Source of the DNA: Octopus sinensis | Taxonomy: Eukaryota | DNA: 54,091 bases | Assembly (NCBI RefSeq): GCF_006345805.1 | Contig: NW_021835240.1 | Coordinates: 1-54,091 of the forward strand | Reading direction: 5' to 3' | Shown: positions 2,472 through 52,552 of the stretch, piece after piece | Numbering within the stretch: position 1 is the first letter of the stretch | Layout: the number at the start of each line of letters is the position of its first letter | Made by a program: the position numbers and the translations under genes | The notes under the pieces: generated by a model | The model's database searches: none | What the model was told of the DNA's origin: nothing | Seen by the model: the letters and a program-made list of their open reading frames with translations, nothing else

Positions 2472-2817
2472 TTATTTCGTAAGAAAGTTGCAAAAAAAAC
2501 TTGATAAAGAAAGATCGCAATGTGCAAGCGTTGCCTTATTTTTGTGACCAATAGTTTCTGATGAGACTTCCTTCCATGCATCAGAAATCACTAATAAAAC
2601 CTGACGTAAATTTATTTTCTTCATAGGAGTTGTATTTTTAGGTATGAAAAATAATTCTATGTTTGAGAATTCCAAATGAATATGAGGCCCAGCATTGCCC
2701 AATAGCAGAATAATTTTCCGATTTTGTGATAAAAAATATTTATTAATCATATGAAGCCAATATCTAAACATATCTTTAGTCATCCATGCATTTTTAGTCT
2801 CTAAACATAATGGAATA
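2472..2817 (-). mobile_element. pogo/Tigger-type DDE_1 transposase fragment
   Basis: KNAWMTKDMF...RKIILLLGNAGPH...IELFFIPKNTT matches the AWMT / LLLDN..H / FLP.NTT pogo motifs; catalytic D changed to G. Confidence 0.8.
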
Positions 2818-3918
2818 TGTCACAGGCGCTACCGGTTACCGAGCGCTACGGGTTACTGAATGCTCAAATTTAACATTTAAAGAATTTTTTATAAAAATTG
2901 AACCTAAATTTTTTTAGTTATTATATTTAAAAGTAATAAATATATAATTTCAATATTTTTAAAAGGCGCAGCATTTGATAATTTTTAAATAGATAATTTA
3001 CCATGCGTATTCTATAAAGTTTTCTTGATGCCTCGCTGTTTTGTCAAAACTGTACAAGAATATGATCATATAGTTAAAATATTGGAAGAGCAGGGGATCA
3101 TTGGAATATCTAAACAAAAAAAATACAGATTAACTCGAAAGTCCAAGAATTTTACTTTCATTACCGGGCGGCTATATCTTAAAGACTCACGTGGAAACCA
3201 TAAAATAGTCATTTCTGCAGACAATCATGAGGTGATGCAATTAGTGGCTACGCAAATTCATCAAATGACTCATTGCGGACATAACACGTTGGAAGAGTTT
3301 TGTAATCAGAGATATTTTTTTGTTAAACGCGAAATCATCTGGAAAGTAGTATCGGAATGTGATATATGTCGATTTGCAAAAATAGTTGATCCTGAAAACC
3401 ACATTATAGCCTCACAACCAAATGAGAGATTTCAGATAGATCTGATTGATTTCAAATGTCCGACGGAACAATGAAAAAAACCCACATGAAACGAATCAAA
3501 AAAATAAATAAAGATCAAAAATAATTAAAATTTTAGTTATAATCCATTAAAAAAGTTTTTTCAATTTCTGTGTAACGTTATATGAAAATTTTGGAGCCTT
3601 AGTGTTTAAACGTCTTACGCCTTATTCTTGAATTAAATCTGTAGTAGATACATTTAGAATTGTTTTTATGTAAGATAACAATTATTAAATCTTAATAAAT
3701 ATATTTTATTTTAATATAGTAATTTTTAAAGCAAGTTTTTGTGCATTATAATTTTAACAAATTAAAAAATATCATAAAAAAATTATAACTTCTTTTACGT
3801 GTTTGATAAAATTAAGTATATTAATTTGAAACATAAAATTTCAAGTATTTTTTCTTGATTTTTTTCTAAGTCCACTCGGGTAACCCGTAGCGCTCGGTAA
3901 TGCCCAGCGCCTGTGACA
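2818..3918 (+). mobile_element. Ginger2/TDD-like DNA transposon family G1, internally deleted
   Basis: ~39-bp imperfect TIRs starting TGTCACAGGCGCT; 5-bp direct flanks GAATA (2813-2817 and 3919-3923); ORF 3025-3474 with integrase zinc-binding H..H/C..C region and ASQPNERFQIDLIDF. Confidence 0.8.
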
Positions 3919-4525
3919 GAATATTTCTCCTTCAATGCATCATGAGAGAAACACACGACCTTCTACATGTAAATCACAACCAACCTCCTCTGCAACTCTT
4001 AATCGAGCACTACCTTCCAATATCCGATCCAATGACCTATCAGAAGATATTCTGGGGGGTTAGGAGGTGAACAAACTACAGACATTAGAAGAGCGGGACA
4101 ACAATCGTTTTCCATTGCATTGAATGTACCAGTCGATCGAGCAATCCGTTCAATTTCAGCTTCAATTGCCAGCTGAGTTTCTTTACTTTTCTCCAATGTT
4201 CGTCCAGCTTAGACTTCTGTCTTGCTAGTTCAGTAAATTCTGTTTTCTCCACATTTACATTGAGGGAACCACTCAGCAAGTCTATTTGCCATCACCTCCA
4301 GTAGGCTTTCCAGAGCGTCCCTGTCGGAGAGAAATAAAATCCACGTCATCCGCGTATGCCATCACATTGATCTTTCCTTCATAGTATGATTTTTTTCTCA
4401 ATGCAGCTTCCAGATATATGACAAACAGTATAGGAGATAACGGATCCCCTTGAGGTGTTCCAGATGTTGTTTCAAATGGTTTAGAGCACTTGTCTCGTAC
4501 CCTGACCGATAGATAGGTTTCTACA
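3919..4525 (-). mobile_element. RTE-like reverse transcriptase fragment
   Basis: TPQGDPLSPILFVIYLEAALR and AYADDV motifs, cleanest in the copy at 16565-17171 (+). Confidence 0.82.
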
Positions 4526-4539
4526 AAGTTGAATAGAAG

Positions 4540-4950
4540 GAAGAATATACGTCCAAATAATTACAACTTTGACATTGTGGTGTGCGGAGAATATTCTGTG
4601 GACCAATCTCTACTCAGAGCAGCCGTATGGGGGACACAATGTGTGTGTTTATGTATATGGACAAAGCTCGGAAAGATTACTACTTCAGTCTATTGGAAAA
4701 AATAAAAAAGCATACAAGTGAAGTGAAGAGAATCGGAGGAGAGTGTAGCCTGTTTTTCTCTGCAGTGGATTTTAATGATGGGGACATGATAGGCTTGCTT
4801 CAAAATCGCAGTCGAATCTCTAAAGAGGGTGTGTCTACTCTATGTTTGGATGAGGATGTCCTTATCTCGAGTTTGGAGAGAAGAGGTTCGGAGTTCACCG
4901 TGTCTTTCAAATCACGATATTTAATAAGAAGGCAGGTTTCTGATTTTTAA
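4540..4950 (+). pseudogene. Degenerate kinesin motor-domain fragment (kinesin-14/Kar3-like)
   Basis: Across frameshifts reads YNFDIV...SLLRAAVWGHNVCVYVYGQSS/GKITT...FSAVDFNDGDMIGLL, resembling F.FD.V, GYNVCIFAYGQTGSGKT and SFLEIYNE.I.DLL. Other copies at 16146-16559, 22797-23210 and 25751-26164. Confidence 0.45.
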
Positions 4951-4957
4951 ATTTCAT

Positions 4958-5400
4958 GTGTTTGCCAAAAGACCAAATGAACGATTCCAAGTAGATCTTA
5001 TAGACGTTAAAAAATTTAACGATTCAAATGATAGCTACAAATGGATATTTAAAGTCATTGATGTTTACAGTAAGTATGTCATCTGTAAAGAAGTTAAAAA
5101 TAAATCTGCAATAGGTATATTTAAATCTGACATTGGTATTTAGATATTTGTGAAACCTTTGAGAAAATTTGTTTTGAAATCGGTCTTTGTGAGATTCTAC
5201 AAACAGATAATGGAACGGAGTTTAAGAATAATTATTTTGATTCTTTCTGCCTTAAAAACAAAATCAAACATATTTATGAAAGACGAAATCATCCTCAATC
5301 ACAAGTAATGATACAATATTTATTTGTTTCAGGGTATCGTGGAACAAAATCCCGTCCTTAAAGTAATGTATACTTACTTTTTACTCAATTTAGTTTTTGA
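4958..5400 (+). mobile_element. Ginger-like rve integrase core with micro-introns
   Basis: Removing GT-AG introns 5115-5143 (29 nt) and 5305-5332 (28 nt) gives PNERFQVDLID...VIDVYSKY...LQTDNGTEF...HPQSQGIVE in one frame (D,D,E triad). Confidence 0.82.
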
Positions 5401-5419
5401 CACAGAATAAAAATATGCC

Positions 5420-5760
5420 AACTATTAATAGATTCGGTGGTGGTTTACAGTGAGTGAGTAGAAGTAACGAATACGACCTACTTGCAAACGAACTGTCGGT
5501 TTTCTATGAAGCAAAAGTGAAGATTATTCGAATTGTCTTGACATGGGATGGAGTTGTCTCAAAGTTCTTTAAAAGTCATATGAACAAGTTATCCATTGAA
5601 GAAGGAACGAGGACATACATCACAGTTGTGATGAAAAGGACGCTAGAGAGTATGCTTATCGGGCACAGACATGTGATGAAGGTAGACAACGAGGAGTACG
5701 CCTCTGCCGCCAATCAACTTACGGAGGTGACATCTCGTGAGGACACTCAGCTGAATAAAA
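5420..5760 (+). mobile_element. C-terminal restriction-like endonuclease fragment of an RLE-type non-LTR element
   Basis: EYDLLANEL...IVLTWDGVV...KRTLES, the K..KY..L / IP.V...G.V region of RLE domains; repeated at 15308-15634 and 26675-26950. Confidence 0.7.
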
Positions 5761-7112
5761 TTATTCCGCCGAGTCGAGGGCCCTCCGTATGATGTCATTC
5801 ATGGCAGAGTGCCTCGGGAAACGTCCGGCACTCCTCCTGCACGATAAAGGGTTCAGACCGAAAGGGTCAACAGTGCAGCCACAGCGGCACGTGTGCGGGA
5901 CACATTGCCTTAGTCCGAGTCGCAGAGAGACTCCGATCCTTACCGCTTCATCGTCAAGGAGAGTGCCAGATGGGGCGTTCAGGAATGCACAAAGCCAAGC
6001 TCCGCTAGCCGAGGATGCTGCCAACAGAAGGCAAGCGCGGCGGTGCTGGTTGGACGACTCGAGCAGCAGATTGAAAGTTTGCTTGCATCTAATTCGATCC
6101 CAGGCTCGTTGAGACATTCGATCTTCCGGAAAGTCAAGACCTTGTTCTCTCCAGACTTCGCTGAAATGAGCCACATTTGTGTCCAAGGAAAATTCAGAAA
6201 AGGAGCGTAGAATTTCCATGACAAGTGTGTGGCTCGCGGAGACGGAAGAGAGGTAAGCAGGTAACGATAGGTCGGAACATGAGCGGATGCCGAGCCCTCC
6301 AAAAGATAACGGGAGGGTTGCCTGTCTCCAACCCATGTCGTCGAAAGGGGAATTGCATACGTTCTGAGTGCAAGTGCGGATAAGAGGGTCAATGGCTGAA
6401 AGCCTCTCTGGAAAATCAAAAACACGGAGAAGAGCGAAGCAAATAGGAGAGCTTTTGGATGAAAAGCAATTCCGTAGGAGGAATAATGCAGTGTGCGAGT
6501 CCAGCTGTCTGATACGATCAAAAGCTTCCTCGAGGAAAAATTCTTTTTTACGTAGGGCCACATCGATAGAGTTGCCAGCTACCGGGGCTCCGAGGATAAA
6601 AAGTTCGTCAATGGGAGTAGATTGAACTCCCGGGATAAGATCGCAGAAAGCGGAAACAGCGTCTTCGAAAATAGATTGCGAGCATCCGAGGTTGGTAATT
6701 TCACATTTGGAGGAATTTAAAATGAGGCCGATTTTCTCCAGAGCCGGGATGATTTTAATTATGTCCTGCAAGACGATGTCCGGAGGGCCACCGAGAGTGG
6801 CGTCGTCGAGATACCAGAGGTTTAATGGAGAAGATAGAAGCTTGGTCATCTCGGAGATTCCAAGACAGAAAAGGAGTGGCCCCAGAGGGTCTCCCTGTTG
6901 TCTCCCGAAGCAGACGGGATAGTGTCGGAATCAAAGATAAGGGAAGATGGTTGGCCATATGATTGGAAAGCGAGCCCAAATAAGGAAGGACAATACTCAG
7001 AGCAGGCCTCTAAGACTCTGTCCCGTCGGATACTGTTGAATGCATTTCTGATGTCAAGCTTGATAAGAATGTTTGGACATTGTGATTTCCTGCACGCTTC
7101 TGTGAACGTGAA
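5761..7112 (-). mobile_element. CRE-clade-like non-LTR retrotransposon fragment (RT and zinc knuckle)
   Basis: VKLDIRNAFNS, frameshifted QQGDPLGPLLF, WYLDDATL, ATLPLSFGGLGIR, SGAWL, C.C...H/NPLSC and RHSAMNDII motifs; truncated before the RLE. Confidence 0.85.
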
Positions 7113-7809
7113 ATAGTAAAATTATTTACAACATTAGTAAATTATAATGTGAATTATTTTTATTTTTGATAATATAAATTGCAACATAATTCAACCGGTC
7201 ACATTAATTAATAGATATTTAATAGTTATTTTTTTTACTACAATGAACGCCCATCTTCCTATTCATCCTCTTTAGTATTGATCATCACCACCGATCGTTT
7301 GTATTTCAAAATTAAATGATGTTTCTGCTGACGATTCTTCAGGTTGCTTAAAATGTCCCGCCTTCTACAGAGTCAATGATCAAGATTCGACAGTACAAAG
7401 GAATTACTAATTTTTCAATTTTGCCTTTCAAATAAAATCTTTAATTATCATTTATTTGACAAAATTGAAAACTTTTTTGGCCAACCGCGTTTGCTTCGAG
7501 CATTCATATCCTCCGGGAATATCCCGATTAACGCTTCCTTAATTTGAATGTATTCGTTAATGTTTCTGACGTAACCCTTAAACCCAGACATCACAAAGTG
7601 TGAGTAACCACGCTGTTAAAATTAATATACTTTTGGGTAAGCCATTTTTAAAAGATAATTCAAATGTAATTTTAAATTAAAATAATTGATTAATCTACAC
7701 TCTTCCATATATAAATTGCTATATTCAATATTTAATACCTTTTCTGCGGTTTCCATAGAAACACGTAAAAGGACTGGCTGCCCATAGCGACATAGTCGCC
7801 CATGTGACA
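7113..7809 (-). mobile_element. Ginger-like family G2, one end plus integrase N-terminus (partial)
   Basis: Ends ...CCCATGTGACA at 7809; homologous to parts of 36768-37667; MMSGFKGYVRNINEY-type N-terminus. Confidence 0.75.
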
Positions 7810-8084
7810 TATTATCTCTCACATGTTTCCTGGTGTGACAAAAAAGTTGTCTTTTATTTGAAAATGTGGCATCACATTGATTGAAGTTACATTTCAAACT
7901 CAAATTTGAATGAAATCTTTTTTTGTGTCGAGATAAGGTTTGTTTAGACACAAAAGTGGCATTACAATCATCGAATGGACAACTTTAAATTCTAAAAATG
8001 CTAATAAACTTTAATTTTGTTGTTTCTTATTGTTTGGTGGGATGACTGATGGATTGATGTCTTAATAAATGTTGTTTGCGTGTA
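7810..8084 (-). pseudogene. GTF3A: 3' half of a TFIIIA-like C2H2 zinc-finger gene (end of finger 2, fingers 3-4)
   Basis: TRKQHLLRHQSISH, 27-nt intron 7983-8009, CPFDDCNATFVSKQTLSRHKKRFH and CNFNQCDATFSNKRQLFCHTRKH; in-frame TAA at 8027-8029; cut by Ginger G2 after finger 4. Confidence 0.68.
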
Positions 8085-9304
8085 CACTCCTCGACATTAA
8101 AATCCGGACAATTAATAAATCGTCATTTTTATTATTAAATTTAGAAAAAAAAACCTTTGAGCATAATATTCTTTTCTATATTAAAAAAGATATATTTACA
8201 AAAGTTTTATAAAACGATATTTAAAAGCATAAAATGTGTTTTCAGCGGAGTAAAATTCTGGACACTTTTGCTATTATAATTAAAAGAGCTAATTTTTTAA
8301 AATATTTTAGAAGAAATTAATGGATTCTTTTTGTAAAAGACAAATTATTTCTTATTACCAGCAAAATTTTTCTTATAGGAGAATTTCTGATATCCTCGGA
8401 GTTCCGAAATCAACCGTTTTCGATGTTGTTCGAAAATACATAAACTCAGGAACCATTTATAGAAAAAGTGGGTCTGGAAGACCAACATTACTCAATACAA
8501 ACGAAATCAAAATATTAGTGGAACTTTCTGAAGCCAATAGTGAAAAAATCTGCTAAAGACCTCGATCTAGAAATGAAAACCATCACTAAAAAGTAATTTC
8601 CCCACTAACAATTACCCGGAATTTAAACAAGAATGTTTTATTTGGAAGAGTAGCAAAAAAAACCATTGTTAAGTAAAAAAACACTCAAAAGATATGAAAT
8701 ATCGAAAATATTCGTTGGTATGTATGATGAAGGATGGAGATATATCATTTTTTCAGACGAGTGTACTTTATTATGCACCAGAAAAAAAATAATATACCGA
8801 AAAAGGGGAAATGAATTCAAAAATTCAAATTATCACCCAACTGTTAAGTGTGGTGACGGCAAAATTATGGTCTGGAGATGCTTTTCATATTTTGGAATGG
8901 GTTCGTTATGTTTCATCGATGAAAATATAAACATTCTTGCTAACAATCTGGAAAAATCAGCCATTAAAATGGAATTAAACACCTTCATATTCCAGCAAGA
9001 CAATGCCCCATGTCATACTTCGAAAGCAACAAAGGAGTATTTTTCTGGAAACAAAATTAATTTACTCGATTGGCCGGCACAATTCCCATTGAACATATTT
9101 GATCAAAAATTAAATATAAATTCTCGAGGGATGATACAGAAAATTGACCAAAAAATAAACATCAACAAAAGGATAAAATATTAGAAATTTGGAATAAAAT
9201 TCCAATTGATTTTATTCGAAAATTAATAAATTCGATGAAAACTCGTAGTTTAGAGTTATATAAATCGAGAGGAAAGCATATTCCTTACTGATATTTTATT
9301 TTTT
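8085..9304 (+). mobile_element. Tc1-family transposon (left TIR plus frameshifted transposase)
   Basis: TA at 8083-8084, then TIR CACTCCTCGACATTAAAATCCGGACA; HTH, GSGRP, IIFSDE, FQQDNAPCH and DWPAQ motifs; ends KSRGKHIPY*. Confidence 0.9.
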
Positions 9305-9442
9305 AATTACATTTTTAATAAAATAAATTACATATAAATATATTTTTATGTATAATATAATATTCCTTACTGATATTTTATTTTTTAATTACATTTTTAA
9401 TAAAATAAATTATATATAAATATATTTTTATGTATAATATAA
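9278..9442 (+). repeat. Tandem duplication of an ~82-bp AT-rich unit
   Basis: ATATTCCTTACTGATATTTTATT... starts at 9278 and again at 9360; the unit straddles the Tc1 breakpoint at 9304. Confidence 0.9.
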
Positions 9443-9523
9443 TGGCCAATTAATCGGTATCGGTGAAATTGGCCGATAATCGGTAATCGGCAAAATCCAA
9501 AAATGGTTATCGGTGCATCACTA
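9443..9523 (-). mobile_element. Isolated hAT-like transposon end
   Basis: Reads TAGTGATGCACCGATA on minus with repeated CCGAT(T/A)A subterminal motifs; no partner end found. Confidence 0.5.
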
Positions 9524-9878
9524 ATAGTAGGTTTTCAGGACTTATGAATAACATATTTCTTGATCTGAGATCAATTTGTATTATGTTTGAGGCATTTGAA
9601 AGAGCACTTTACCCAGAAATGATAAAAATTGTCGGTCTTTTGGTATTTTGTGTAAATTAGGTGATTTGGGTAGTCTCAGATGAGAAACTTTGGTAAACTT
9701 GGTGGGGGTATTTTTTATTTTGGGAGGTCATAATCTCCATGTGTGCTATCAAATATAAAGGCTAGACGATAGCCGATCCAAATTTATTCATTTATAATAT
9801 CGTTTTCAATATTATAGGTAATACAAACAATTATTTATTAAATTAAAAATATTAATAATTTAAAAAAACAATAATAAA

Positions 9879-10040
9879 ATGCATCCTTGCAAGTTTAAAT
9901 CATGTGACAAGTCATTTACTCGTCTATACAAATTAGAAACACACATTCGAACACATTTAGACGAAGTAATCACTAATCATAACAAAAATATTAATAGAGA
10001 CCACAAATCTGCAAAATTGACTGGTGTAACAAAGCATATA
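9879..10040 (+). pseudogene. GTF3A: 5' half of a TFIIIA-like C2H2 zinc-finger gene (finger 1, start of finger 2)
   Basis: MHPCKFKSCDKSFTRLYKLETHIRTHLDE, 32-nt GT-AG intron 9966-9997, then RPQICKIDWCNKAY; stops at TA 10039-10040 followed by a Tc1 TIR. Confidence 0.7.
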
Positions 10041-10288
10041 CACCCCTCGACATTAAAATCCGGACAGTTAATAAATCGTCATTTTTATTATCAATTTTAT
10101 TAAATTAAAAACTTAAGCATGCTAATATCATCTATATTTTTTAATTTTATAATATTTATCCATAAATCTTTTTAAAATATTGAGAATAAAGCAAAAACCG
10201 ATTTTTTAAGACAAAAAATTTCGGACAAATGTCAAAAAATAAAATATCAGTAAGGAATATGCTTTCCTCTCGATTTATATAACTCTAA
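10041..10288 (-). mobile_element. Right end of the same Tc1 element (right TIR plus transposase C-terminus)
   Basis: CACCCCTCGACATTAAAATCCGGACAG matches the 8085 TIR; 10234-10288 is the reverse complement of 9250-9304. Confidence 0.88.
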
Positions 10289-12575
10289 TCAGTCTTGATC
10301 CTCAAAGGAATCCCTCATTGGATCTCGACAGAGGACCTTAACCTCCACCTGAGAGAAAGTCTAGAATCGGACTTCAAGTCCGAAAGATTTTCTCGCAGTG
10401 GAACCGACATGCCTGTCGGCAGACTCACGCTGGATTCCAGAGCCGAGGTCAACACCCTCATCCGCTTTGGAATAACTGCGGACTTCAGCCATATCCGCTG
10501 CGAATGGCACAAGCCCCCAAACTCCGTTGTCTCCTCTGCGGTAAAGAACACAGGCACCAAAACTGCCCGAGTTCGAAGCCGATACCGAGCGTCCCAGCTG
10601 CAAAAACTTGCATTAACTGCAAGAACACTGGGCACTTGGCGTTCTACGGTGGATGTCCGCCTGCCAAAGCAGCAACAGCAGCCTCAAGGGTTGCGAAGAA
10701 CCCACAAGCCAAAAGCCCAGTCCGCTGGGTAAAAGCCAATCCCACAGAATCAGTCTGGACAAAAGGGTCTTCCTCAAGTCCGTCCAAAGTCGATGTCTAT
10801 ATTCAGACGTCGCCGGTCTCCAGCACACTCACAAGCTCGAGGTCGAACACTAATGAGTTCCAAAACACACAAGTGGTCCGCTCGGCTGGCCCCATATGAA
10901 GGCAGGAATCCACCGTGACAAAGCTTTGCCACAACGAGGTCCCCACTCGGATCAGGACCTACACAACAGAGATGCCCTACTGGAATTCTTTCGCCGTTGT
11001 GTAGGAGCCCTGACCAAACTTGGAGTGGACATGAATATGTTGCAAGAGCTCCTGCTAGAAGGGAGCAATTCAGCAACATAGCCACTATCAATATAATCGC
11101 TGTGAATGCCCGATCTATCAAGAGACGGCATCACGACTTCGTTGAGATGGTGAACAGCGGCCATCCAGACATTATTGTTGCCAACCAGTCGATGCTCAAG
11201 GATGATGACTCTTACCAGCTCTCAGGCTACCGGTCAGCTCTACGCCTGGGACTGGCTCAAGCATCTTCTATTGCGAAAAACTCCAAGTCCGTAACCTTAC
11301 TATCATCGAGGGGACACTATGTGAATTCCTCTCCCTTGAGGTGAAAACCGAATCTTTCTGGCTAAAGGTCGGTGAAATATACTGCAAATATCTTCCTCCC
11401 TGCACCAGTCTGATTAACGATTTCTTCTCAAATACCGCTCACTGCCTTCTTATCGAAGACTTAAACTCGAAGCACACGGCGTTTGGATGTCGATTAACCA
11501 ACCAGGATGGTCGAACACTGAAGAAGATCACTGACAAACTTGGTGTTTTCGTAAGAACATCTGAAGACCCGAACCACCAATCGCCCTTCGGCGAAGACAA
11601 CCTATCCCTGTGCATTTGTTCTCACTTGATCGCTAACATTATGGAAAAGCCTACAGTGCTTGACGATATCGGCAGCGATCACCTTCCAATGGAGATCAAA
11701 ATTCACACTAGCACTGTTAAACAAGAACGCATATCCACACGCTACAGTCTCTCAAGGATCAACTGGCCACACTACAGAAGCTCCATGAGTGCTTTCCTAC
11801 ATGTGAACACTCGCCCTACTGACTATAACACTGCCAGCGACATCGACTATGCAAGCGATGAGTTAACCAATTTCATGCTCCATTATTTAACATCGTACGG
11901 AACAGTGCCATGTACTGAACGGCCACGAAGATCCACTCCAAGAACGAAAGTGAAACTTCTCCTCAACGAGAGAAAGCGGCTGAGAAACAAACTCAAACGC
12001 TGTTTTGACCCCACTGACAGGGGTAGACTTAAAAACATGATCTCGAAAATTGGCTATGAAGTCCAAGTCGTGACAAAGCTGGAAACAGCCAGAAAATGGC
12101 AGAAGGCTTGTCAAAACTTAGACTACAGAAACCCAAATTTCTGGGACTGTTTCCGCAAAGTGGCTAACCTTGAAGGAAAATCCTGACCCCCGAGGCTGTG
12201 CAACGTATCTGGTATGTCCGCTTCGCCACAAGAAATCCCGAACATTTTCGCAGAACACTTGGCTATTATCCAGGAAACCAATCCGATAACGCCGCAAGGC
12301 ACGGAATCGGAGCCACCGCCGCGCGCTCTGTCGTCGGAACATCACCCGATCACCACTGCAGAGGCAACGCACCAGGTTCATCAAAAGGCAACGCACCAGG
12401 CCACGACAAAATACCGATGCAGCTCATTGAGAAATCTATCAGGTCTTTCCATAGAAGATCTCAAGTGACCGACCTTTTTATCGATCAGGACTAGTGACCG
12501 CCCAGCTTTTCCCGGACAGCTATAAACGTTTCTCAGAAGAGTTCGAGTGCCTCGAGCAACCATCTTTTTGTATAG
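10289..12575 (+). mobile_element. LINE-B copy 1 (Jockey-like; partial ORF1, APE domain; 5'- and 3'-truncated, frameshifted)
   Basis: CLLCGKEHRHQNC and CINCKNTGHLAFYGGC knuckles; INIIAVNARS, DLNSKH and IGSDHLP APE motifs; KAPGHDKIP RT start. Confidence 0.9.
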
Positions 12576-12719
12576 ACGTCAAAAATATTTCTGTACCAGT
12601 CTCTTGTTCTTTACAATAAAAAATTCTGTTCTGTTATTTGTCATTTTATAATATTTATCTTGACAAAATAGATTTTGAAATAGAATTCAAATATTTTTTG
12701 AATTTTTTTCCAAGTCCAA

Positions 12720-12762
12720 AAGTATAACCACCTAGGCTCGGTAACACCCTAGGCTTGTGACA
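12720..12762 (-). mobile_element. Terminus of Ginger-like family G3
   Basis: TGTCACAAGCCTAGGGTGTTACCGAGCCTAGG on minus; shares TGTCACA and GTTACCGAGC with the G1 TIR. Mirrored near 29545-29587. Confidence 0.6.
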
Positions 12763-13199
12763 TAATAATTTATAAAAATAATATAACAATAATTAAATTC
12801 GTGTTCAGTTTAAAAAAAGTCTAGAAATAGAAAAAATATAACAATAATGATTAAAATTTGGTAGAAATTGATCATTTTAGATTTTAGGGCGCTAAAATAG
12901 CAGATCGCCAAATCTGTGAACAAATAAATAAAAGTTTGGCATAAGAATATAAAGAAAAGAACTTTCTATCAAAAATAAGGTGAAATTCAATGAATAAAGA
13001 TAAATTAGAAGATTTCAAATAAGCGATATAAACATATTGAAAGAATAAACTCGCAAATATTACAAAATGATGAAATTTCAGATAATTTAACCATTAAAGG
13101 AAACTACATCGCGAAATATCCCTTCTGAATCCAATTAAATAAAAAAATTAAGATCGACCAAATAATGTAACAGGACAACAAGGTTTGTCAAAAGAGTGC

Positions 13200-14790
13200 T
13201 CACACGTGCCACAATTTATTAGGTTTTCTATTGATAATTGGGTAACTAAAAATTAAGATAATTTTAATTAAAACACAATTCTACCTAGTAGCTTATCAAC
13301 AGTGTAAATACCAGAGGGGATATCTCAATGATGGTCCAGATATCTGAAATAAAGACTGCGATAATAATATTTATTTCTGTTTCATAGAGAATCGACAATT
13401 AATTTGCAAGGAGATTGTATTTCTGAAATATCCACGTGCCAAATTTGTTTAACAAAAAATCTATACAAATCAATTTATGATAGGCGTTTCTAGAAAGGCG
13501 ATTCTAGGAAATAAAGAGTAAATTTTTTTAAATCTGAATATGCAAAACAATCATCATTTTTTGGATGTGGCGCCACATCTTTGTTTATAAGAGGTTTATA
13601 GTATCATTGTGTTATTCACCAGGAAAATTAAATTACAAAAAAATAAAAATGGAAAATGTTCCAAAATCGTTGTATTCATCGTCAATTGGATAAGGACAAA
13701 CGCCCTCAATCATCAAAACTTCAAATCTTTTATAAATGATATTGATGCCGATTGTGGAGATGTTATTCTTTATACTGCAGTTAGATTGTTGAGTCGTTCT
13801 GTATGTTTAAAAAGCTATATGATAATTATAAATTATTTGTAGGTTTTATAAATTGCTTTCAGAACTTAAAGAGTTTATTCCTCGTAACATCAATATCTTC
13901 AACTGAATAATGAAAATAGGTTGCCGACTTGGAATTTTTTGTTGATTTTTCATTACGTATTTTGGATTTGAACATTGGTTTACAAAGAAAAGACAAGCTT
14001 TGCTATCAATTATAGGATTTATATCCTCTTTATTCAAAAAACTATATTTGTGAAAGATTCAACTTTCAAATAGACATTCTTTGCTTTTTCCTATGCTCTC
14101 GGAAAATAAGGAAAGCGCATCGTATAAAAAATATATATCAATAATTGGCGACTTAATTTATCAATTTGAGTGCCGCTTTGGGGCTAAATTACAAATATAA
14201 TAAAATATAGAATTTTAGAGAAGACTTATCCACAATGAAAATATTTGAGACATCTTTTGATGTCAAAATTGGAAAATGTCCTGTACGATTCCAAATGGAA
14301 TTAAGTGATTTGACAACTAATTTAGAATTAAGTGCCTTATTTTATAATACTTTTCTTAGAATTTTACCAATGTCTACATAAAGAAAAATTTAGGAATCTT
14401 GTGAATAATCCATATATGAATGCTTCAATTTTCGGATCAACGTAAGCATATAAATCCATTTTCAGCAAAATAGCTAGAATTAAGAACAGATACCGCAATA
14501 GACTAACGGATGTTCATCTAAGTCAGTTGCTGCGGATTTTAACATCTAATTTTGTACCAGATTTTGAAAATATGATTAAGTAGTTTATAAATTCTTCCAT
14601 TTTTTAATTTCATTACGCTATATAAAAAATTTGCGACGATAGCACTCAACTCTAAAGTGCATGTACCCAGTAAAATAAAAATCATATGTATTTTGTTCCG
14701 TTCAAACTGAAATAAAAAATATATTATCTTCATTAAGTTAACAAAAAAATTTGCGGCCCTTATAAATAGAAAATTTGATTTGTGAATTCA
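13200..14790 (+). mobile_element. Heavily degraded hAT (Charlie/SPIN, GTF2IRD2-like) transposase
   Basis: IVNWIRTNALNHQNFKSF...DVILYTAVRLLSR matches the VN.IR...LNHRQF / EVRWLSR block; the 3' part resembles 51391-52169. Mirrored at about 27520-29110. Confidence 0.75.
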
Positions 14791-14919
14791 GGTCTGTATG
14801 TTAATTGCCAATTTCTCCGAACAACGAAAAGGTCTGATTTCTGCATTTTTATATCAAAAATAAAAAGCTCTGTATTTGAAATTTGTCGGAAAACTGGAAA
14901 TGATTGAAGAAAAACATTT

Positions 14920-15230
14920 ATTTAAAAAGAAGCTGTTAGTAGAGGTTAGATAAGGACCTTCAGCATTCCTGTCTTTTCAGTCCCCCACACACGCTCACCT
15001 CTCAGCCTCAAACTAAGACTTATTAAAAGCGGAGAAGGGAATACATTAAGCCAGGAGCCTGAGTATGGCTGACAGGCGGAACGGAAACAAGCCAGTCTGT
15101 GTTGGTCGATGAGTGGTTCCAAGTCAGTTGAAAATCGACGACAAAGAATTTTGTCTCAATCCCGCTAAAAAAAGACACCGGAAGGGACTTCAGAGAAATT
15201 GTGTTTCCAAAGTGCAAGCCTATTTTAAAT
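14920..15230 (-). mobile_element. 5'-truncated LINE 3' end whose 3' UTR is homologous to that of LINE-A
   Basis: 14928-15022 aligns by eye with 17331-17431 (GCTGTTAGT..GAGGT..ATAAGG..ACCTTC.GCATTCCTG.CTTTTC.GTCC..CACACACGCTC.CCTCTC). Mirror at about 27080-27390. Confidence 0.7.
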
Positions 15231-15299
15231 TATTTAATTAAAAATCTAGATTTTCAGTGATCTCTTCTTCGCTTGGAAGAAAAATTTTCTATAAACTTT

Positions 15300-17296
15300 C
15301 TTTCATTTTATATTTCTGCGTCAATAATTTTATTCAGCTGAGTGTCCTCACGAGATGTCACCTCCGTAAGTTGATTGGCGGCAGAGGCGTACTCCTCGTT
15401 GTCTACCTTCATCACATGTCTGTGCCCGATAAGCATACTCTCTAGCGTCCTTTTCATCACAACTGTGATGTATGTCCTCGTTCCTTCTTCAATGGATAAC
15501 TTGTTCATATGACTTTTAAAGAACTTTGAGACAACTCCATCCCATGTCAAGACAATTCGAATAATCTTCACTTTTGCTTCATAGAAAACCGACAGTTCGT
15601 TTGCAAGTAGGTCGTATTCGTTACTTCTACTCACTCACTGTAAACCACCACCGAATCTATTAATAGTTGGCATATTTTTATTCTGTGTCAAAAACTAAAT
15701 TGAGTAAAAAGTAAGTATACATTACTTTAAAGGACGGGATTTTGTTCTACGATACCCTGAAACAAATAAATATTGTATCATTACTTGTGATTGAGGATGA
15801 TTTCGTCTTTCATAAATATGTTTGATTTTGTTTTTAAGGCAGAAAGAATCAAAATAATTATTCTTAAACTCCGTTCCATTATCTGTTTGTAGAATCTCAC
15901 AAAGACCGATTTCAAAACAAATTTTCTCAAAGGTTTCACAAATATCTAAATACCAATGTCAGATTTAAATACCTATTGCAGATTTATTTTTAACTCTTCT
16001 TTACAGATGACATACTTACTGTAAACATCAATGACTTTAAATATCCATTTGTAGCTATCATTTGAATCGTTAAATTTTTTAACGTCTATAAGATCTACTT
16101 GGAATCGTTCATTTGGTCTTTTGGCAAACACATGAAATTTAAAAATCAGAAACCTGCCTTCTTATTAAATATCGTGATTTGAAAGACACGGTGAACTCCG
16201 AACCTCTTCTCTCCAAACTCGAGATTAAGGACATCCTCATCCAAACATAGAGTAGACACACCCTCTTTAGAGATTCGACTGCGATTTTGAAGCAAGCCTA
16301 TCATGTCCCCATCATTAAAATCCACTGCAGAGAAAAACAGGCTACACTCTCCTCCGATTCTCTTCACTTCACTTGTATGCTTTTTTATTTTTCCAATAGA
16401 CTGAAGTAGTAATCTTTCCGAGCTTTGTCCATATACATAAACACACACATTGTGTCCCCATACGGCTGCTCTGAGTAGAGATTGGTCCACAGAATATTCT
16501 CCGCACACCACAATGTCAAAGTTGTAATTATTTGGACGTATATTCTTCCTTCTATTCAACTTTGTAGAAACCTATCTATCGGTCAGGGTACGAGACAAGT
16601 GCTCTAAACCATTTGAAACAACATCTGGAACACCTCAAGGGGATCCGTTATCTCCTATACTGTTTGTCATATATCTGGAAGCTGCATTGAGAAAACTAAA
16701 ATCATACTATGAAGGAAAGATCAATGTGATGGCATACGCGGATGACGTGGATTTTATTTCTTCCGACAGGGACGCTCTGGAAAGCCTACTGGAGGTGATG
16801 GCAAATAGACTTGCTGAGTGGTTCCTCAATGTAAATGTGGAGAAAACAGAATTTACTGAACTAGCAAGACAGAAGTCTAAGCTGGACGAACATTGGAGAA
16901 AAGTAAAGAAACTCAGCTGGCAATTGAAGCTGAAATTGAACGGATTGCTCGATCGACTGGTACATTCAATGCAATGGAAAACGATTGTTGTCCCGCTCTT
17001 CTAATGTCTGTAGTTTGTTCACCTCCTAACCCAGCCAGAATATCTTCTGATAGGTCATTGGATCGGATATTGGAAGGTAGTGCTCGATTAAGAGTTGCAG
17101 AGGAGGTTGGTTGTGATTTACATGTAGAAGGTCGTGTGTTTCTCTCATGATGCATTGAAGGAGAAATATTCTGTCACAGGCGCTGGGCATTACCGAGCGC
17201 TACGGGTTACCCGAGTGGACTTAGAAAAAAATCAAGAAAAAATACTTGAAATTTTATGTTTCAAATTAATATACTTAATTTTATCAAACACGTAAA
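15300..17296 (-). repeat. Second copy of the composite block (RLE fragment, integrase, kinesin-like, RTE fragment, G1 end)
   Basis: Reverse complement of about 3794-5790; G1 terminus TGTCACA at 17172. Confidence 0.9.
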
Positions 17297-17428
17297 GGAA
17301 GGAAAATTTTTATTTTAAATAATTAGTTAGAGAGGCTGTTAGTGAGGTAACATAAGGAGACCTTCGGCATTCCTGCCTTTTCGGTCCAGCACACACGCTC
17401 GCCTCTCTACACAACCACAGGTTAGGAC

Positions 17429-20040
17429 TTACCGTCTTACCTGCCACCCAGTCATTATCTTCTCTAGGACCTCAGGGAGGCCTTTGAGGGACAATTCCTG
17501 GGCGTTGGAGAGCTCATCACGCCATCCTAAGCCATAGGCTAGCCGGATGGCTCGTCTTGTTACTTTCTTAAGCGCGTCAACGTACTTCTCCCTGTCCTCG
17601 CAGAAGTGCCAAGCGTGCACGCCATAGGTTAACACGGGTAACACCATGGCGTTGAACACACGGAACCAGGCACCTCTCTCTCAAGTGGAAAGCACGCAAC
17701 GCGCCTAATCGCTGCATTGCACGCATTTTAGTACGTGCAATGTGATCATCGAACTTACCTGACTGCTTGAAGACCACGCCCAAGTAAGTTGTCCGATCAA
17801 CTACAGCGATCGCTGACCCGTCCAGCGATAACCTAGGGATAAAATTAGTGTAACCCCTCGTCCTTTTACAGACTTTAAGGACACTGCACTTGTCCGCACA
17901 CATCTTTAGACCCCTACTCCCACACCAGTTTACAAGTTCATCCACAGCAACCTGTAGCCTACGACACGCACACTCTGGTTTCATCGACTGATCCCAGAGG
18001 ATAATGTCGTCTGCATAGATCACCATTCCAGTACGAGCATTGACTGGCATAGGTGCAGAGGCCATAAAGATATTAAACAGTGTGGGACTCAGCACAGAAC
18101 CCTGAGGGACCCCGCGAAGGACTGTTGCGACTTTAGAAAAGACCCCCTGGTGTCGCACGACCTGACCGCGAGATTCGAGGAACCCCGACAGCCAGCGCCT
18201 TAGACACGGAGAAACCCCACACGTGGCGAGGGAACTCCGCAGGCCGTCGTGCCACACCGAGTCGAAGGCCTTTTCTATGTCAAGACTAACTAACATACCA
18301 CACTCCCTTTTCTGGAGGGCGTTCTTCATTTCGGAAGACACCTTCCACAAGCAGTCTCCACATGAACGACCCTCCCTGAATCCCCATTGGAACTCCGGGA
18401 GGGCGTCAACCACCGTCAGCTCCTCCAGGAGCCTTCGGTGCATGATCCTTTCTAGGATTTTAGATATAGCGGGAAGCAAGGAAGGGCCTGTATCCCCCGG
18501 GGACATCATGAGGCTTCCCAGGTTTTCCAATGAGGATTACCTCAGCCACTTTCCACCTGGAAGGAATCATCCCAAGTCGCAAGCTCCCGCTAAACAAAAC
18601 CTGTAAGGCCGTGATCAACAACGGCGGGGCCTTTTTGAAGATGGACATAGGGATCCGATCTAGCCCCGCCGCGGTGTTCTTACTTCGGGAGATCGCTGCC
18701 AGGATCTCCCTTTCAGAAACTTCGCCTGCATCGACCCTTGATATGTCCAGCTGGCAGCGCTTGTTCCAAGACAATACCTCCTGGATAGTAACAAAAGACG
18801 ACGTCTCTACGAACTGACTTCCGTCAGTTCCCGAGATGTTGTTGAGGTGGGTTGAAAATATATCAGCCACCTCAACCGGGTCCGAGGCGAGGGTTCCATC
18901 AGAGCGCTTAAGGCGCACTGACTTTGCCTCCCCTCTCCCTCGACAGGCTCTTCAGTTTTTCCAGAAGTCCGGAAAGCGCGGGTCCACTCTTTGGCAGGCC
19001 CGCTCCCACCGTGAACTTTCGTGTTCACGAATTTCCCTCCGGATCTCCCTCTGAAGCCGGCTGATCCAGCCGCGAAACCAGACACGGTTCTCCTGGTAGA
19101 CGCATTTGTCCCGCAGTCTGGACAGCCGGCGCTTGAATCTAATTTTATTTAGCACCCGGTACGGGAGCGTGGAATGTGCCTGGCCCTGTACTGGGTTCTG
19201 TTTGAAATTATCTCGCATATAATCAGACAGGGCAGCATTGATTCCATTATCTAACGCCTCCAACTCTCGTATGTTGGCGCAGGTATTCCCCACCAGGAGT
19301 GAGGGCAACCTGCTGGCCATGAACCTCTCCAGGTTGGCCCAGGAACCGGACCGGAGGTCAAAGTATCCTGGGGCCCTTTGAGGAACTGGCTCACGGAGTT
19401 CGTGCAATAGAGGCAGATGGTCGCTCCCAATATCAGGCAATAAGATTGTGTTACTAACCCAATTTAGCATTCCGGGGCTGACCAGAGCAAGGCCTAGCCA
19501 GTCTTGTCCTCCCCGCGAATCGATGTGGTTTGGCTCGCTTGAAGATCTGATTTCCAACCCGAGGTCTTCAACCAGCGTCTTTAGAGCCAAACCATGCGCG
19601 TTGGTTACCCTGAAACCGAGCTCTTGGTGCTTGGCATTCAGGTCCCCAACGACCATCGCCTTCGGATGCTTTCCAAAGAACTCCCGTACGTGCCAAGAAC
19701 ACGCCGTAAAGTTCTTCGAATACATCGCCCCTAGGTAAAATGTTAAATTACCTATGCGAATCCTCACTTGGAGGAATTCACATAGGCTACAAGAACATAA
19801 ACCTGAGCTCCGGAGAGCAAGGTACGGCTTGTAGAAGAGGCTAGTTCCCGTGCCACATATTGACCCCTGTTTCCAGGGTATGTGACAACAGTTGTAGCCA
19901 TCAACTACGTACGGACCCCCCTTTACCTTCGTTTCGTTGACCACCAGAATGTCCGCACTCGTGGTGGCCAACATCCTCTGAACGGCGTCTCCTTTACCAG
20001 ACAAGGAGCGCGCGTTCACCGATATAATGTTGAGCATCAT
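17429..20040 (-). CDS. LINE-A ORF2 (APE endonuclease plus RT), broken by a few frameshifts
   Basis: NIISVNARS, VVNETK, GDLNAKH, GSDHLP, TAAGLDRIP, QWGFREG, LDIEKAFDSV, GVPQGSVLSP, YADD and YLGV; start overlaps the ORF1 stop as ATGA (20040-20037). Confidence 0.9.
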
Positions 20041-21443
20041 ATCGGTTCCTCACCAAGGATCTTCTTGGCCTCAGCCATGTTGCAATGTAGCATATCTGCT
20101 ACACTGCACTTCGTCGCCCTACATAATTTTAGTAGGCGCACACACAACTCCACCGCAGGACTAACACTGTCCTGGGGAGCACGCTCGCCAGGGGGGGAGT
20201 GCGGTGGCATTTCCACGTATGGAGGACGCCTTTTCCCCCCTAGGTTTTGCTGGGCGGTATCACCTGTAGCCCACTCGGAAGGCTTAGCACGCTTCGGCAT
20301 CCGAACTGACTCGGATGTTATTAGCGGCTCAGCCGACTTTGTCGGCGAAGGTGGTACCGACTCGCTCGCAATGTGGCTTGCAGGCTTCACAGGCCTTGCC
20401 ACCGAAGCAGTCTTGGGTGGTTTGGACTGCTTTGCCCGCTTGCCAGGTTGTGGCCCAGTAACTGCGACGCTAGCCGCGCGACTTACCTTCGAGATTACAG
20501 CCGCACCTACCTTTCGGGTTGCCTCCTTGAACTTGGGGCAACCTTTGAAGTTGGCAATGTGTCCCAACTTACCGCAGTTGACACAGTACCTCTTCGTAGG
20601 TGGCGAGGGGCATGCCTTGCGACCATGCTCGCCACCGCAGGTCAAGCACTTCGCCTTCTCAGGACACCTCGTGCTTATGTGCCCGAAACCCTGACACCGA
20701 AAGCATTGGGTGGCTTTCGGGCGGGGCCGGACAGCACGAAGCCTAACGTAGCCGACCCTCGTACCCAGCAGTATGAGGCGCTCGGCTTCCGCAGGAGATC
20801 CCAGCGTAACCTCCACCACTTCAAGAGGCCGATAACCTTGCTTGAAGCGTGCAATGGCAGAGGTACTGGGGTACTCCCGCTGCAGGTGCTCTAAAAGGTC
20901 GTTATCCTCAAAGTCCCGGGGGACCCCAAGGAGGAGGACTCTTACCTGCCCTACCTTGCGTTCGAACCTGACAAGCCGATGCATGCCAGGACCGAACGGG
21001 ATGGACTTTTCCAGCTCCCTTTCGAAACTGAAAAAGTCCTCAGACTTCTCCCACCCAAGCAGGAATTGGGTGGGCTCCCTCTTCAGGACTCGATACCGCT
21101 TAGACGGCTGTATCGAGTCCAAGATCCCTAAAATTTTAACGACTGAGGCCTTTCCACAGGTGGGAAAGACCTCTAGTCGTGCTACAACGCCGAAGGTAAT
21201 TCTACCCCCGGCGCGAGCGGTCTTCTTCGACGGCGGATCCATCTCCGAAGACGAATTGCGAGAACCTAAGTTGTTAGAAATTGGACGGCAAGCGACACGT
21301 TTAGGTTTCCCAACGGTATGCCAGCCGTCCTCATGGGCTACCTGAGCAGGTTCTACCACATCCCCTTCTGTTCGGGATGGCTTTGCACCCCTTTTTTCTG
21401 CTTTAAGATTGTCATTTTTGCGCATCACAGGAAAAACGACCAT
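20037..21443 (-). CDS. LINE-A ORF1 gag-like protein (468 aa, three CCHC knuckles)
   Basis: Open ORF with CFRCQGFGHISTRC, CLTCGGEHGRKAC and CVNCGKLGHIANFKGC. Confidence 0.92.
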   Translation of the reverse strand: MVVFPVMRKNDNLKAEKRGAKPSRTEGDVVEPAQVAHEDGWHTVGKPKRVACRPISNNLGSRNSSSEMDPPSKKTARAGGRITFGVVARLEVFPTCGKASVVKILGILDSIQPSKRYRVLKREPTQFLLGWEKSEDFFSFERELEKSIPFGPGMHRLVRFERKVGQVRVLLLGVPRDFEDNDLLEHLQREYPSTSAIARFKQGYRPLEVVEVTLGSPAEAERLILLGTRVGYVRLRAVRPRPKATQCFRCQGFGHISTRCPEKAKCLTCGGEHGRKACPSPPTKRYCVNCGKLGHIANFKGCPKFKEATRKVGAAVISKVSRAASVAVTGPQPGKRAKQSKPPKTASVARPVKPASHIASESVPPSPTKSAEPLITSESVRMPKRAKPSEWATGDTAQQNLGGKRRPPYVEMPPHSPPGERAPQDSVSPAVELCVRLLKLCRATKCSVADMLHCNMAEAKKILGEEPI

Positions 21444-21461
21444 GCTTGCACGCTACAATTT

Positions 21462-21616
21462 AAATATTTTTTCAAAAGGACTACCACCTGTTTGAGTCTA
21501 TACGGTAGTCACGCTTATGCCTGGCTTTGCCTAACTTGAACGTCTCAGCAAAACCAGACACAAATTAGTTAACTGCACACAAGCAGCAACCAGTTAAACG
21601 ACTACATCGTCTCAGT
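21462..21616 (-). other. rDNA ITS1 (~155 nt), not followed by 5.8S
   Basis: Directly downstream of the 18S 3' end; contains a GACTACC...GGTAGTC hairpin; no 5.8S consensus follows. Confidence 0.7.
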
Positions 21617-21740
21617 AGTGATCCTTCTGCAGGTTCACCTACAGAAACCTTGTTACGACTTTTACTTCCTTTAAATGAGTAGGCTCGGGTGTCTACTCGC
21701 ATGCTATAGCACACGATCCAACAACCTCACCAAATCATTC

Positions 21741-21784
<44 letters not shown>

Positions 21785-37034: not shown

Positions 37035-37085
37035 TCGAAATTAAATGATGTTTCTGCTGACGATTCTTCAGACATTTTTGACAAA

Positions 37086-52520: not shown

Positions 52521-52552
52521 GTCTTTTCACGGATCTTTGGAAATTTCTCTGA

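Follow-up and report, generated by a model that had tools for sequence, protein, structure and literature searches.

A Tc1-family insertion and a proposed 984-bp inversion in a dead TFIIIA-like zinc-finger fragment

A C2H2 zinc-finger gene in this stretch of Octopus sinensis DNA carries one Tc1-family element, inserted at a TA dinucleotide inside its second finger. Judged from its sequence, the locus is a dead remnant of four fingers with nothing functional left in it, and the gene from which it came is plausibly TFIIIA-like. The history proposed here for this fragment combines the Tc1 insertion with an inversion of 984 bp and a tandem duplication of 82 bp. Its ancestral arrangement is inferred from a single sequence, and we regard the history as a whole as evenly poised between right and wrong. 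The locus represents the usual debris of a region rich in transposons and noisily assembled, and no new kind of system is involved. Throughout, the window refers to the whole stretch of DNA analysed, which is 54,091 nucleotides long.

The site of insertion can be read from the protein that it interrupts. Two half-fingers encoded on opposite strands join through one TA, in frame, into the finger CKIDWCNKAYTRKQHLLRHQSISH, the spacing of which (C-x4-C-x3-Y-x5-L-x2-H-x4-H) is that of a correct C2H2 finger. The surviving parts of the gene, in coding order, are:

9879 to 9965, plus strand: exon 1, MHPCKFKSCDKSFTRLYKLETHIRTHLDE, with its ATG at 9879 (translation and regular-expression scan)
9966 to 9997, plus strand: a 32-nt GT..AG intron in the linker between fingers 1 and 2 (sequence reading)
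9998 to 10038 plus TA, plus strand: 5' part of finger 2, RPQICKIDWCNKA(Y) (translation)
8042 to 8082, minus strand: 3' part of finger 2, (T)RKQHLLRHQSISH, the minus-strand half beginning at 8082 (translation)
7982 to 8041, minus strand: 60 nt separating fingers 2 and 3 and containing two TAA codons in frame (exhaustive donor/acceptor enumeration)
7910 to 7981, minus strand: finger 3, CPFDDCNATFVSKQTLSRHKKRFH, with H-x4-H spacing (regular-expression scan)
7823 to 7891, minus strand: finger 4, CNFNQCDATFSNKRQLFCHTRKH (regular-expression scan)
7818 to 7822, minus strand: GTGAG just 3' of finger 4, in the context ...AAA CAT/GTGAG/AGATAATATG (sequence)

Finger 1 lies at the extreme N-terminus of exon 1, and an in-frame stop is found six codons upstream of the ATG at 9879. 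Between fingers 2 and 3, exhaustive enumeration of donors and acceptors in 7982-8041 yielded no usable GT/GC..AG intron. The sole working pair, AT..AG, was rejected as the intron here since it leaves an implausibly short linker of four residues. The stops and the missing intron mean that either the gene or its assembly is defective here. The window contains three intact C2H2 fingers, all at this locus (9888-9956 on the plus strand; 7981-7910 and 7891-7823 on the minus strand), and elsewhere the pattern is matched just twice, by identical strings devoid of finger-like residues in the two copies of one LINE (LINE A). Chance matches to the pattern average 0.27 per window over 30 shuffles. A regular-expression scan and tblastn with four TFIIIA-type proteins found no more of the gene in the window beyond 7823-8083 and 9879-10040. 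In particular, fingers 5-9 are absent from the window by both methods, which shows truncation and does not imply an ancestor that lacked them.

The 3' boundary of the remnant is set by a mobile element:

7455 to 7817, no strand assigned: end of an unclassified terminal-inverted-repeat DNA transposon, 97% identical to 37311-37675

This transposon end meets the gene at 7817/7818, five bases past the codon for the last His of finger 4. Those five bases, GTGAG, probably derive from a 5' splice site, which would place the abutting transposon in an intron. The copy is itself cut on the left by LINE sequence, whereas the full copy at 36578-37675 spans 1.1 kb, with inverted ends of roughly 70 nt; the terminus AGATAATATGTCACATGGG is common to both. 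The earlier note had attributed the cut after finger 4 to a Ginger element. A transposon end does lie there, but its assignment to Ginger is not supported. Ginger elements have TGTNR termini, a short target duplication and an integrase-like transposase. Here, both copies share eight more bases outside the TGTCA (terminus AGATAATATGTCAC...), no direct target duplication was found in the flanks of 7455-7817 or 36578-37675, and no ORF was found in the 1.1-kb element. With only four fingers in the window, a transposon end just past the fourth and no canonical intron between fingers 2 and 3, the locus reads as a dead remnant, the remainder of the gene having been taken away by other transposons.

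Several comparisons suggest a TFIIIA-like origin. Among the best 30 colinear matches from 270 comparators, 25 are annotated as TFIIIA and align in register to fingers 1-4, and the tblastn pieces obtained with TFIIIA-type proteins are colinear across the TA break. Against models of individual finger positions, finger 2 of the remnant is matched best by the TFIIIA finger-2 model (26.6 bits; runner-up, 16.0 bits) and finger 3 by the TFIIIA finger-3 model (26.4 bits; runner-up, 19.0 bits), while fingers 1 and 4 rank second for the TFIIIA models of their own positions. The match to Varanus TFIIIA reaches 71.9 bits in a single stretch. However, the margin over GLI and CTCF is small: summed scores in a PDB search are 67.5 bits for Xenopus TFIIIA, 64 for CTCF and 62.7 for GLI, and fingers 3-4 alone do not separate the families, with REF6, CTCF and ZIC3 scoring above TFIIIA in the PDB comparison. 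Identity to any TFIIIA is low (about 30-39%), and a word-indexed protein search found no close homologue of the rejoined protein. All that a full HMMER scan of 1.84 billion representatives yielded were long poly-finger proteins, whose ranking by summed score is uninformative on family. The resemblance to TFIIIA proposed earlier is thus borne out by the in-register matches, but it is not decisive, with GLI and CTCF near and no close orthologue in the databases. The companion argument, that an essential gene must either survive intact elsewhere or expose the junction as a chimera, is moot for a locus that is reduced to four fingers, lacks a valid intron between the second and the third, and has none of fingers 5-9 within the window. 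If the organism has the usual working TFIIIA gene, it must lie elsewhere.

The features of the transposon and of the rearranged piece are:

8083 to 8084, no strand assigned: TA target-site copy immediately outside the terminal repeat at the left Tc1 end
8085 to 9304, plus strand: positions 1-1220 of the Tc1-family element, with a left terminal repeat of ~51 nt and the transposase
9250 to 9304, no strand assigned: left copy of the 55-nt duplication, continuous with Tc1 on its left and ending on its right at the novel junction 9304/9305
9278 to 9443, plus strand: 82-bp tandem duplication, two copies with one substitution, spanning 9304/9305
9305 to 9878, plus strand: AT-rich non-Tc1 DNA upstream of the gene's ATG, within the inverted segment, with no other copy in the window
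10039 to 10040, no strand assigned: TA target-site copy immediately outside the terminal repeat at the right Tc1 end
10041 to 10288, minus strand: right end of the same Tc1, inverted, with the right terminal repeat, the 3' untranslated part and the transposase C-terminus
10234 to 10288, no strand assigned: right copy of the 55-nt duplication, running on its left into Tc1, towards the segment interior, and ending at the novel junction 10288/10289

Copies of the Tc1 terminal repeat at 8083-8143 and 10039-10099 stand in direct orientation and are 93% identical. Once re-inverted, the two ends agree in 61 of 70 positions and differ in two of the first 51 nt. The decayed transposase starts at 8321 and ends in ...LELYKSRGKHIPY and a stop. 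Its frameshift-corrected translation matches PF01498 (HTH_Tnp_Tc3_2) at 32.6 bits, just over the cut-off of 31.5, and the transposase matches HTH_SB at 27.4 bits, under that model's own cut-off. A Pfam profile search that included the corrected translation did not detect DDE_3 in it, and the motifs FSDE and QQDNAPCH are seen by eye. DDE_3 matches at 38825-39244 and 52468-52971 mark other Tc1-like elements in the window, and no second copy of the element that splits the gene, or of the fingers, was found there.

A 55-nt inverted repeat (9250-9304 and 10234-10288), 100% complementary and far beyond chance, bounds the flipped piece exactly at both ends. Most of what the earlier note had described was reproduced: the frame and C2H2 spacing restored through one TA, the capping of each gene half by a terminal repeat of the same Tc1 with a TA outside each, the inversion of the 5' half of the gene together with the right Tc1 end relative to the rest, and the 55 bp duplicated at the breakpoints. 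Its proposal that inverting 9305-10288 rebuilds an intact Tc1 needs amendment. The element becomes contiguous only if one 55-bp copy is dropped, since in place the copies come to stand in tandem. Nor is it intact, as the reconstruction of 1,413 bp carries three frameshifts, at poly-A runs, and the region of its third catalytic residue (WPAQFPLNIFD) is degenerate. The earlier note mentions neither the 82-bp tandem duplication on the left junction, nor the 6.95-kb inverted duplication with its edge at 10288/10289, nor the noise of the assembly, in which indels dominate.

These features can be arranged as three steps. First, as the sequence shows, a Tc1-family transposon entered a TA within the codons of finger 2, duplicating the TA that is now seen outside both of its ends. 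Second, a piece of 984 bp would have flipped; it comprises the Tc1's final 248 bp and the gene's 5' half, together with about 570 bp of upstream DNA. Inverted duplications of 46 bp to 1.9 kb, often at one breakpoint only, are reported for inversions that the model of Ranz et al. (2007, PMC1885836) ascribes to staggered breaks, and breakpoint reuse is also documented there. By analogy, one of the breaks may have been staggered by 55 bp inside the Tc1, filled in and joined without homology, which would leave those 55 bp present twice, in inverted orientation, at either end of the flipped piece, as in the present layout. Third, and again shown by the sequence, the tandem duplication of 82 bp arose later, across the left junction. 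Because this duplication spans 9304/9305, it formed after that junction existed, and the substitution between its copies, amid assembly errors that are mostly indels, suggests that the junction has some age. A further repeat, two units of 27 bp at 9443-9496, lies inside the upstream AT-rich DNA. The two joins testable for microhomology, those with a known template flank, show 0 bp (10288/10289) and 1 bp (25075/25076) and are blunt, in the manner of end joining. Aberrant Tc1 transposition was rejected as a cause of the inversion since both breakpoints lie away from the Tc1 ends and what is duplicated is 55 bp and not a TA.

The main difficulty for this history lies on the right flank, where a larger repeat begins:

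10289 to 17234, plus strand: arm a1 of a 6,951-bp inverted duplication, its other arm at 25076-32017 being 99.6% identical

Junction 10288/10289 is, to the base, also the edge of this duplication, which has the same geometry, and the coincidence requires either breakpoint reuse or one complex event. Arm a1 starts in the middle of a LINE, but 10289 is not the start of an ordinary 5'-truncated LINE insertion, as the 6,951-bp repeat is composite, made up of part of a LINE, 2.7 kb of AT-rich sequence and a further retroelement that runs in the opposite orientation. In a homologue search with a LINE ORF, one match was obtained, at 35% identity. If both duplications are real, their shared boundary might tentatively be ascribed to two staggered-break inversions that reused one fragile site, or else to a single multi-switch rearrangement in the germline. 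Also weighing against the history are the modest score margins behind the TFIIIA identity and the visibly error-prone assembly. Repeat copies differ mainly by 1-bp homopolymer indels, the mark of an error-prone long-read assembly; for example, copies of one LINE differ by 3 substitutions as against 13 indels.

This noise bears directly on the question of an artefact, which the earlier note raised. That the Tc1 insertion is real and the flip is an artefact we consider less likely than not, though far from remote. Under this explanation, 9304/9305, 10288/10289 and 25075/25076 would come from chimeric fold-back molecules or reads, such as whole-genome amplification can yield, or from a misjoin in a long-read assembly rich in repeats. 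Three strand-switch junctions fall within 16 kb, and at two of them the strand is inverted over a jump shorter than 10 kb. This form is typical of chimeras from multiple displacement amplification (MDA), 85% of which are inverted, with jumps that mostly stay below 10 kb (Lasken and Stockwell, 2007, PMC1855051). The homopolymer indels betray a noisy long-read consensus, and a single path of strand switching across a single-copy genome would account for the 55-bp duplication, the 6.95-kb duplication and their common boundary together. However, complementarity of 2 bp or more is present at the join in 93.5% of proximal inverted MDA chimeras (PMC1855051), whereas the two testable joins here have 0 and 1 bp. 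The 6.95-kb arms differ by 16 substitutions in addition to indels, a substitution-bearing tandem duplication overlies the left junction, and amplification of the source DNA is without evidence. Sequence alone cannot separate a real inversion from an artefact of assembly or amplification.

A single replication-based template-switching event, through fork stalling or break-induced replication, could instead have made the 55-bp and 6.95-kb duplications together. Each duplication consists of an arm that is continuous with its neighbour on one side and meets a novel junction on the other, and the two share 10288/10289 to the base. This event nevertheless seems improbable, as microhomology is the usual trace of template switching and amounts to 0-1 bp at the testable junctions. 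Moreover, separate inversions are also documented to reuse breakpoints (PMC1885836), and the 6.95-kb unit could represent two copies of a larger mobile composite. It is very improbable that the halves derive from different gene copies or different Tc1 insertions and merely appear to fit. All that favours such an origin is that Tc1-like elements are generally abundant in the window, whereas two incomplete fingers complete each other exactly through one TA, the Tc1 parts overlap by an identical 55 bp, and the window contains no further copy of this Tc1 or of the fingers. Finally, a ciliate-like scrambled germline gene with TA-bounded eliminated sequence and TAA read as glutamine would suit the TA-to-TA rejoining that restores the frame, the intron of only 32 nt and the in-frame TAA at both stops between fingers 2 and 3, but it is rejected on codon evidence, as three long LINE ORFs (317 to 468 aa) use 36 CAA/CAG codons and zero TAA/TAG, and the Tc1 frame is broken by indels and not by TAA codons. 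Also against it, the region is full of GC-rich LINEs, and the 3' part of an 18S fragment seems to read more like animal than ciliate.

If the proposed history of insertion, inversion and tandem duplication is real, the locus would be a tidy textbook case. The insertion site is readable to the base as the split finger reassembles, and the 55-bp inverted duplication would record how far the break behind the flip of one half was staggered. Such a case would be useful for teaching or for calibrating breakpoint analysis, and would add no new biology. If the shared junction is real as well, it would illustrate, on an unusually small scale and with unusual clarity, the origin of inverted duplications and micro-inversions in transposon-rich chromatin. 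For users of the assembly, an indel-rich consensus with several fold-back junctions within 16 kb is a warning flag, and annotators should take the four fingers for part of a pseudogene and not mistake them for the TFIIIA of the organism.

Compared with known systems, the remnant resembles TFIIIA (GTF3A), a protein that binds 5S RNA and its gene, in having finger 1 at the N-terminus, four consecutive C-x4-C fingers, a finger 3 with H-x4-H ending in RFH and a non-canonical linker between fingers 3 and 4. Its finger 2, ending ...RHQSISH, closely resembles finger 2 (...RHQSSCH) of P0087, a TFIIIA-type protein with nine fingers. In contrast to TFIIIA, it holds four of nine fingers in a broken gene, and finger 6 (PF22110, which maps onto Xenopus residues 151-183) is missing, as that part of the gene is absent here. 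The transposon has the hallmarks of a Tc1/mariner insertion into an exon, namely a TA on both sides, inverted repeats of ~51 nt and Tc3-type and Sleeping-Beauty-type helix-turn-helix matches, but this copy is decayed and its right end is inverted relative to its left. MDA inverted chimeras likewise join in inverted orientation to a site less than 10 kb away and leave a partial inverted duplication (PMC1855051); they differ from the present case in its 0-1 bp of complementarity at the testable joins and in the later tandem duplication on the junction. The inversions of Ranz et al. (PMC1885836) are generally larger, from kilobases to megabases, whereas the segment here is a tiny 984 bp inside transposon debris. 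The likeness to them lies in a unique sequence duplicated in inverted orientation exactly at both segment ends, with one breakpoint duplicated; the copies are continuous with their original neighbours on the sides that the model predicts, 55 bp falls inside the reported range, and the breakpoint reuse described for those inversions may apply here as well.

Two directly oriented copies of a Tc1-type end, 8083-8143 and 10039-10099, share 93% identity, and a TA precedes both (8083-8084 and 10039-10040). The split zinc-finger gene is distributed around these ends as follows.

Left of the first Tc1 end, minus strand: 3' part of finger 2, in a frame reading (T)RKQHLLRHQSISH..., then two complete C2H2 fingers
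Left of the second Tc1 end, ATG at 9879, plus strand: first exon, opening MHPCKFKSCDKSFTRLYKLETHIRTHLDE
9966-9997, plus strand: 32-nt GT..AG intron after MHPCKFKSCDKSFTRLYKLETHIRTHLDE
After 9966-9997, plus strand: exon with the 5' part of finger 2, reading RPQICKIDWCNKAY

Fusing the gene halves via a single TA restores the frame and gives CKIDWCNKAYTRKQHLLRHQSISH, a finger with a complete C-x4-C-x3-Y-x5-L-x2-H-x4-H pattern. Because either half-finger is incomplete alone and is completed by the other, and because the finger pattern occurs at a frequency of 0.27 per shuffled window, chance is not a credible explanation for the rejoined finger. All structural statements that the earlier note made on 7810-10288 (the Tc1 ends, the TA, the half-fingers and the frame through one TA) were reproduced. 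The observation is thus confirmed, and the note's interpretation of it finds partial support.

The proposed resemblance to TFIIIA stood up to testing. No close relative of the rejoined protein was found in the databases searched. Among 270 comparators (150 top representatives of a large scan and 120 vertebrate TFIIIAs), ranked by their best single colinear stretch, annotated TFIIIAs account for 25 of the 30 best, in register with fingers 1-4, and Varanus TFIIIA ranks first at 71.9 bits. Two unlabelled top matches from the scan are also of TFIIIA type: the cluster of P0005 includes amphioxus GTF3A, and P0087 scores 189 bits against a nine-finger TFIIIA model and 26.9 bits against the finger-6 Pfam model, its finger 2 ending RHQSSCH, near the RHQSISH of window finger 2. 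When each window finger was scored with nine separate TFIIIA finger models, fingers 2 and 3 were best matched by the models for their own positions (26.6 bits, next 16.0; 26.4 bits, next 19.0), and fingers 1 and 4 placed theirs second. The tblastn pieces are colinear over the TA break. However, GLI (62.7 bits) and CTCF (64 bits) come close to TFIIIA in a PDB search, and fingers 3-4 by themselves do not favor TFIIIA. Judged from sequence, that the gene is TFIIIA-like is probable, not proven.

The window contains no fingers beyond these four. Behind finger 4 come five bases, GTGAG, plausibly a splice donor. A different transposon with inverted repeats then abuts by one of its ends, which shares 97% identity with a full copy at 36578-37675. 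The identification of this end as Ginger, probably based on TGTCA, is unsupported, since the terminus common to both copies runs eight bases further than TGTCA, and neither a target duplication nor an ORF was found for this transposon. Within the full copy, 36893-37030 carries degenerate CCCTAA-type (telomere-like) motifs in a 50-bp x2.3 repeat, a part missing from the truncated copy beside the zinc-finger gene. The 60-nt interval between fingers 2 and 3 contains two TAA codons in frame, which no GT/GC..AG intron could span; either the gene has decayed here as a pseudogene or the assembly is wrong. A ciliate-type code was rejected: three long LINE ORFs encode glutamine by CAA/CAG only, and it is indels, not TAA codons, that disrupt the Tc1 frame.

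The frameshift-corrected translation of 8321-9291 matches PF01498 (Tc3-type transposase helix-turn-helix) at 32.6 bits, above the Pfam threshold; the Sleeping Beauty HTH model also gave a hit, under its cut-off. Together with the TA duplication and the inverted ends, which match at 61 of 70 positions once re-inverted, this identifies a Tc1/mariner element. The earlier note took this element to be intact, but it is not: its length is only 1,413 bp, counting the duplicated 55 bp once, its transposase frame contains three shifts at poly-A runs, and DDE_3 was not detected in it by Pfam search. Two other Tc1/mariner-type elements with DDE_3 matches, unrelated in sequence, lie at 38597-40054 (inverted ends of ~190 bp, 76% identity) and 52468-52971.

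Most differences between near-identical repeat copies in the window (1-1959/19503-21462, 2668-5583/22155-25061 and other pairs) are 1-bp indels in homopolymers. In one pair of LINE copies there are 3 substitutions versus 13 indels, and the arms of a 6.95-kb inverted duplication have 16 versus 12. Such differences are the mark of an imperfectly polished long-read assembly, so errors might account for the frameshifts of the Tc1 and for the defect between fingers 2 and 3, and no frameshift in the window should be taken as biological unless checked.

The window as a whole is AT-rich eukaryotic DNA, dense in transposons. A GC-rich LINE is present in two minus-strand copies (17500-21462 and 1-1959) with a CCHC ORF1, an AP-endonuclease domain, RVT_1 (E = 7e-35) and an ATGA overlap of ORF1/ORF2; both stop at the identical 5' base, with different flanks. 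A ~3.1-kb retroelement, probably itself composite, occurs four times (2655-5765, 15323-17315, 22155-25075 and 25076-26983), with a weak integrase zinc-binding match at 3025-3474 (+; E = 0.0015) and a reverse-transcriptase fragment at 16687-17004 (+). The minus strand of 21463-22197 holds a partial 18S rRNA (Rfam model positions 1169-1823) and, after it, ~160 bp that could be ITS1; the stretch abuts a LINE 5' end (21462) on one side and a 3'-truncated retroelement copy (22155) on the other. It appears to be a stranded rDNA piece among transposons, with several normally invariant positions altered. A 21-bp satellite, TAATCCCACTTAGTTTTCTGC, forms 47 copies at 53105-54091 and continues past the window end; related short arrays lie at 50033-50089 (opposite orientation) and ~52553-52610. 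In the less repetitive right part, 47930-48316 (+) has a weak carnitine/choline acyltransferase match (E = 2.4e-4, under the Pfam cut-off) and may be a host-gene exon.

The inverted piece is bounded exactly by a perfect 55-nt inverted repeat (9250-9304 / 10234-10288), with novel junctions at 9304|9305 and 10288|10289. Each copy is continuous with Tc1 sequence on its left side, the left copy with the transposase C-terminus and the right copy with the Tc1 3' end. The Tc1 piece is indeed inverted, but simple re-inversion "in place", which the earlier note held to rebuild the element, would set both copies of the 55 bp one directly after the other; only one was therefore present in the ancestral Tc1. 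The layout is Lf-a-rc(M)-rc(a)-Rt (Lf and Rt, flanks; a, 55 bp; M, remainder of the flipped piece; rc, reverse complement), which would be the expected product if one of the two breaks was staggered and the other blunt.

Position 10289 also starts a segment of 6,951 bp, unnoticed previously, whose inverted second copy (25076-32017) is 99.6% identical to the first (10289-17234) across a 7.8-kb spacer. The segment is made up of part of a LINE, including its endonuclease domain, a 2.7-kb AT-rich tract and a second retroelement in opposite orientation. This composite structure indicates a segmental duplication, as opposed to a pair of separate insertions. The arms run on into neighboring sequence at different ends (17234|17235 and 32017|32018), a layout that fits an inversion in which one end was duplicated, as for the 55-bp repeat. 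Since both structures share 10288|10289, either a breakpoint was reused, or one complex event made both, or the join is artefactual.

We favor, with moderate confidence, a real rearrangement, either a simple inversion or one complex event. That the flip junctions are an artefact is less likely: an inverted join to a site <10 kb away is the hallmark of amplification chimeras (PMC1855051), but 93.5% of such chimeras have complementarity of at least 2 bp at the join (PMC1855051), whereas the testable joins here (10288|10289 and 25075|25076) have 0 and 1 bp. These blunt joins speak for a real rearrangement, as do the substitutions between the 6.95-kb arms. So does the left junction itself: an 82-bp unit spanning it, 27 bp from the Tc1 and 55 bp from the new neighbor, is present as two tandem copies that differ by one substitution, which implies that the junction existed on a molecule that later changed. 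The staggered-break model was put forward for Drosophila inversions by Ranz et al. (PMC1885836), who found inverted duplications ranging from 46 bp to 1.9 kb, in many cases from a single breakpoint, and frequent breakpoint reuse. The locus thus shows an event of a known kind, a Tc1 insertion plus a proposed micro-inversion by staggered breakage, within the fragment of a dead gene.
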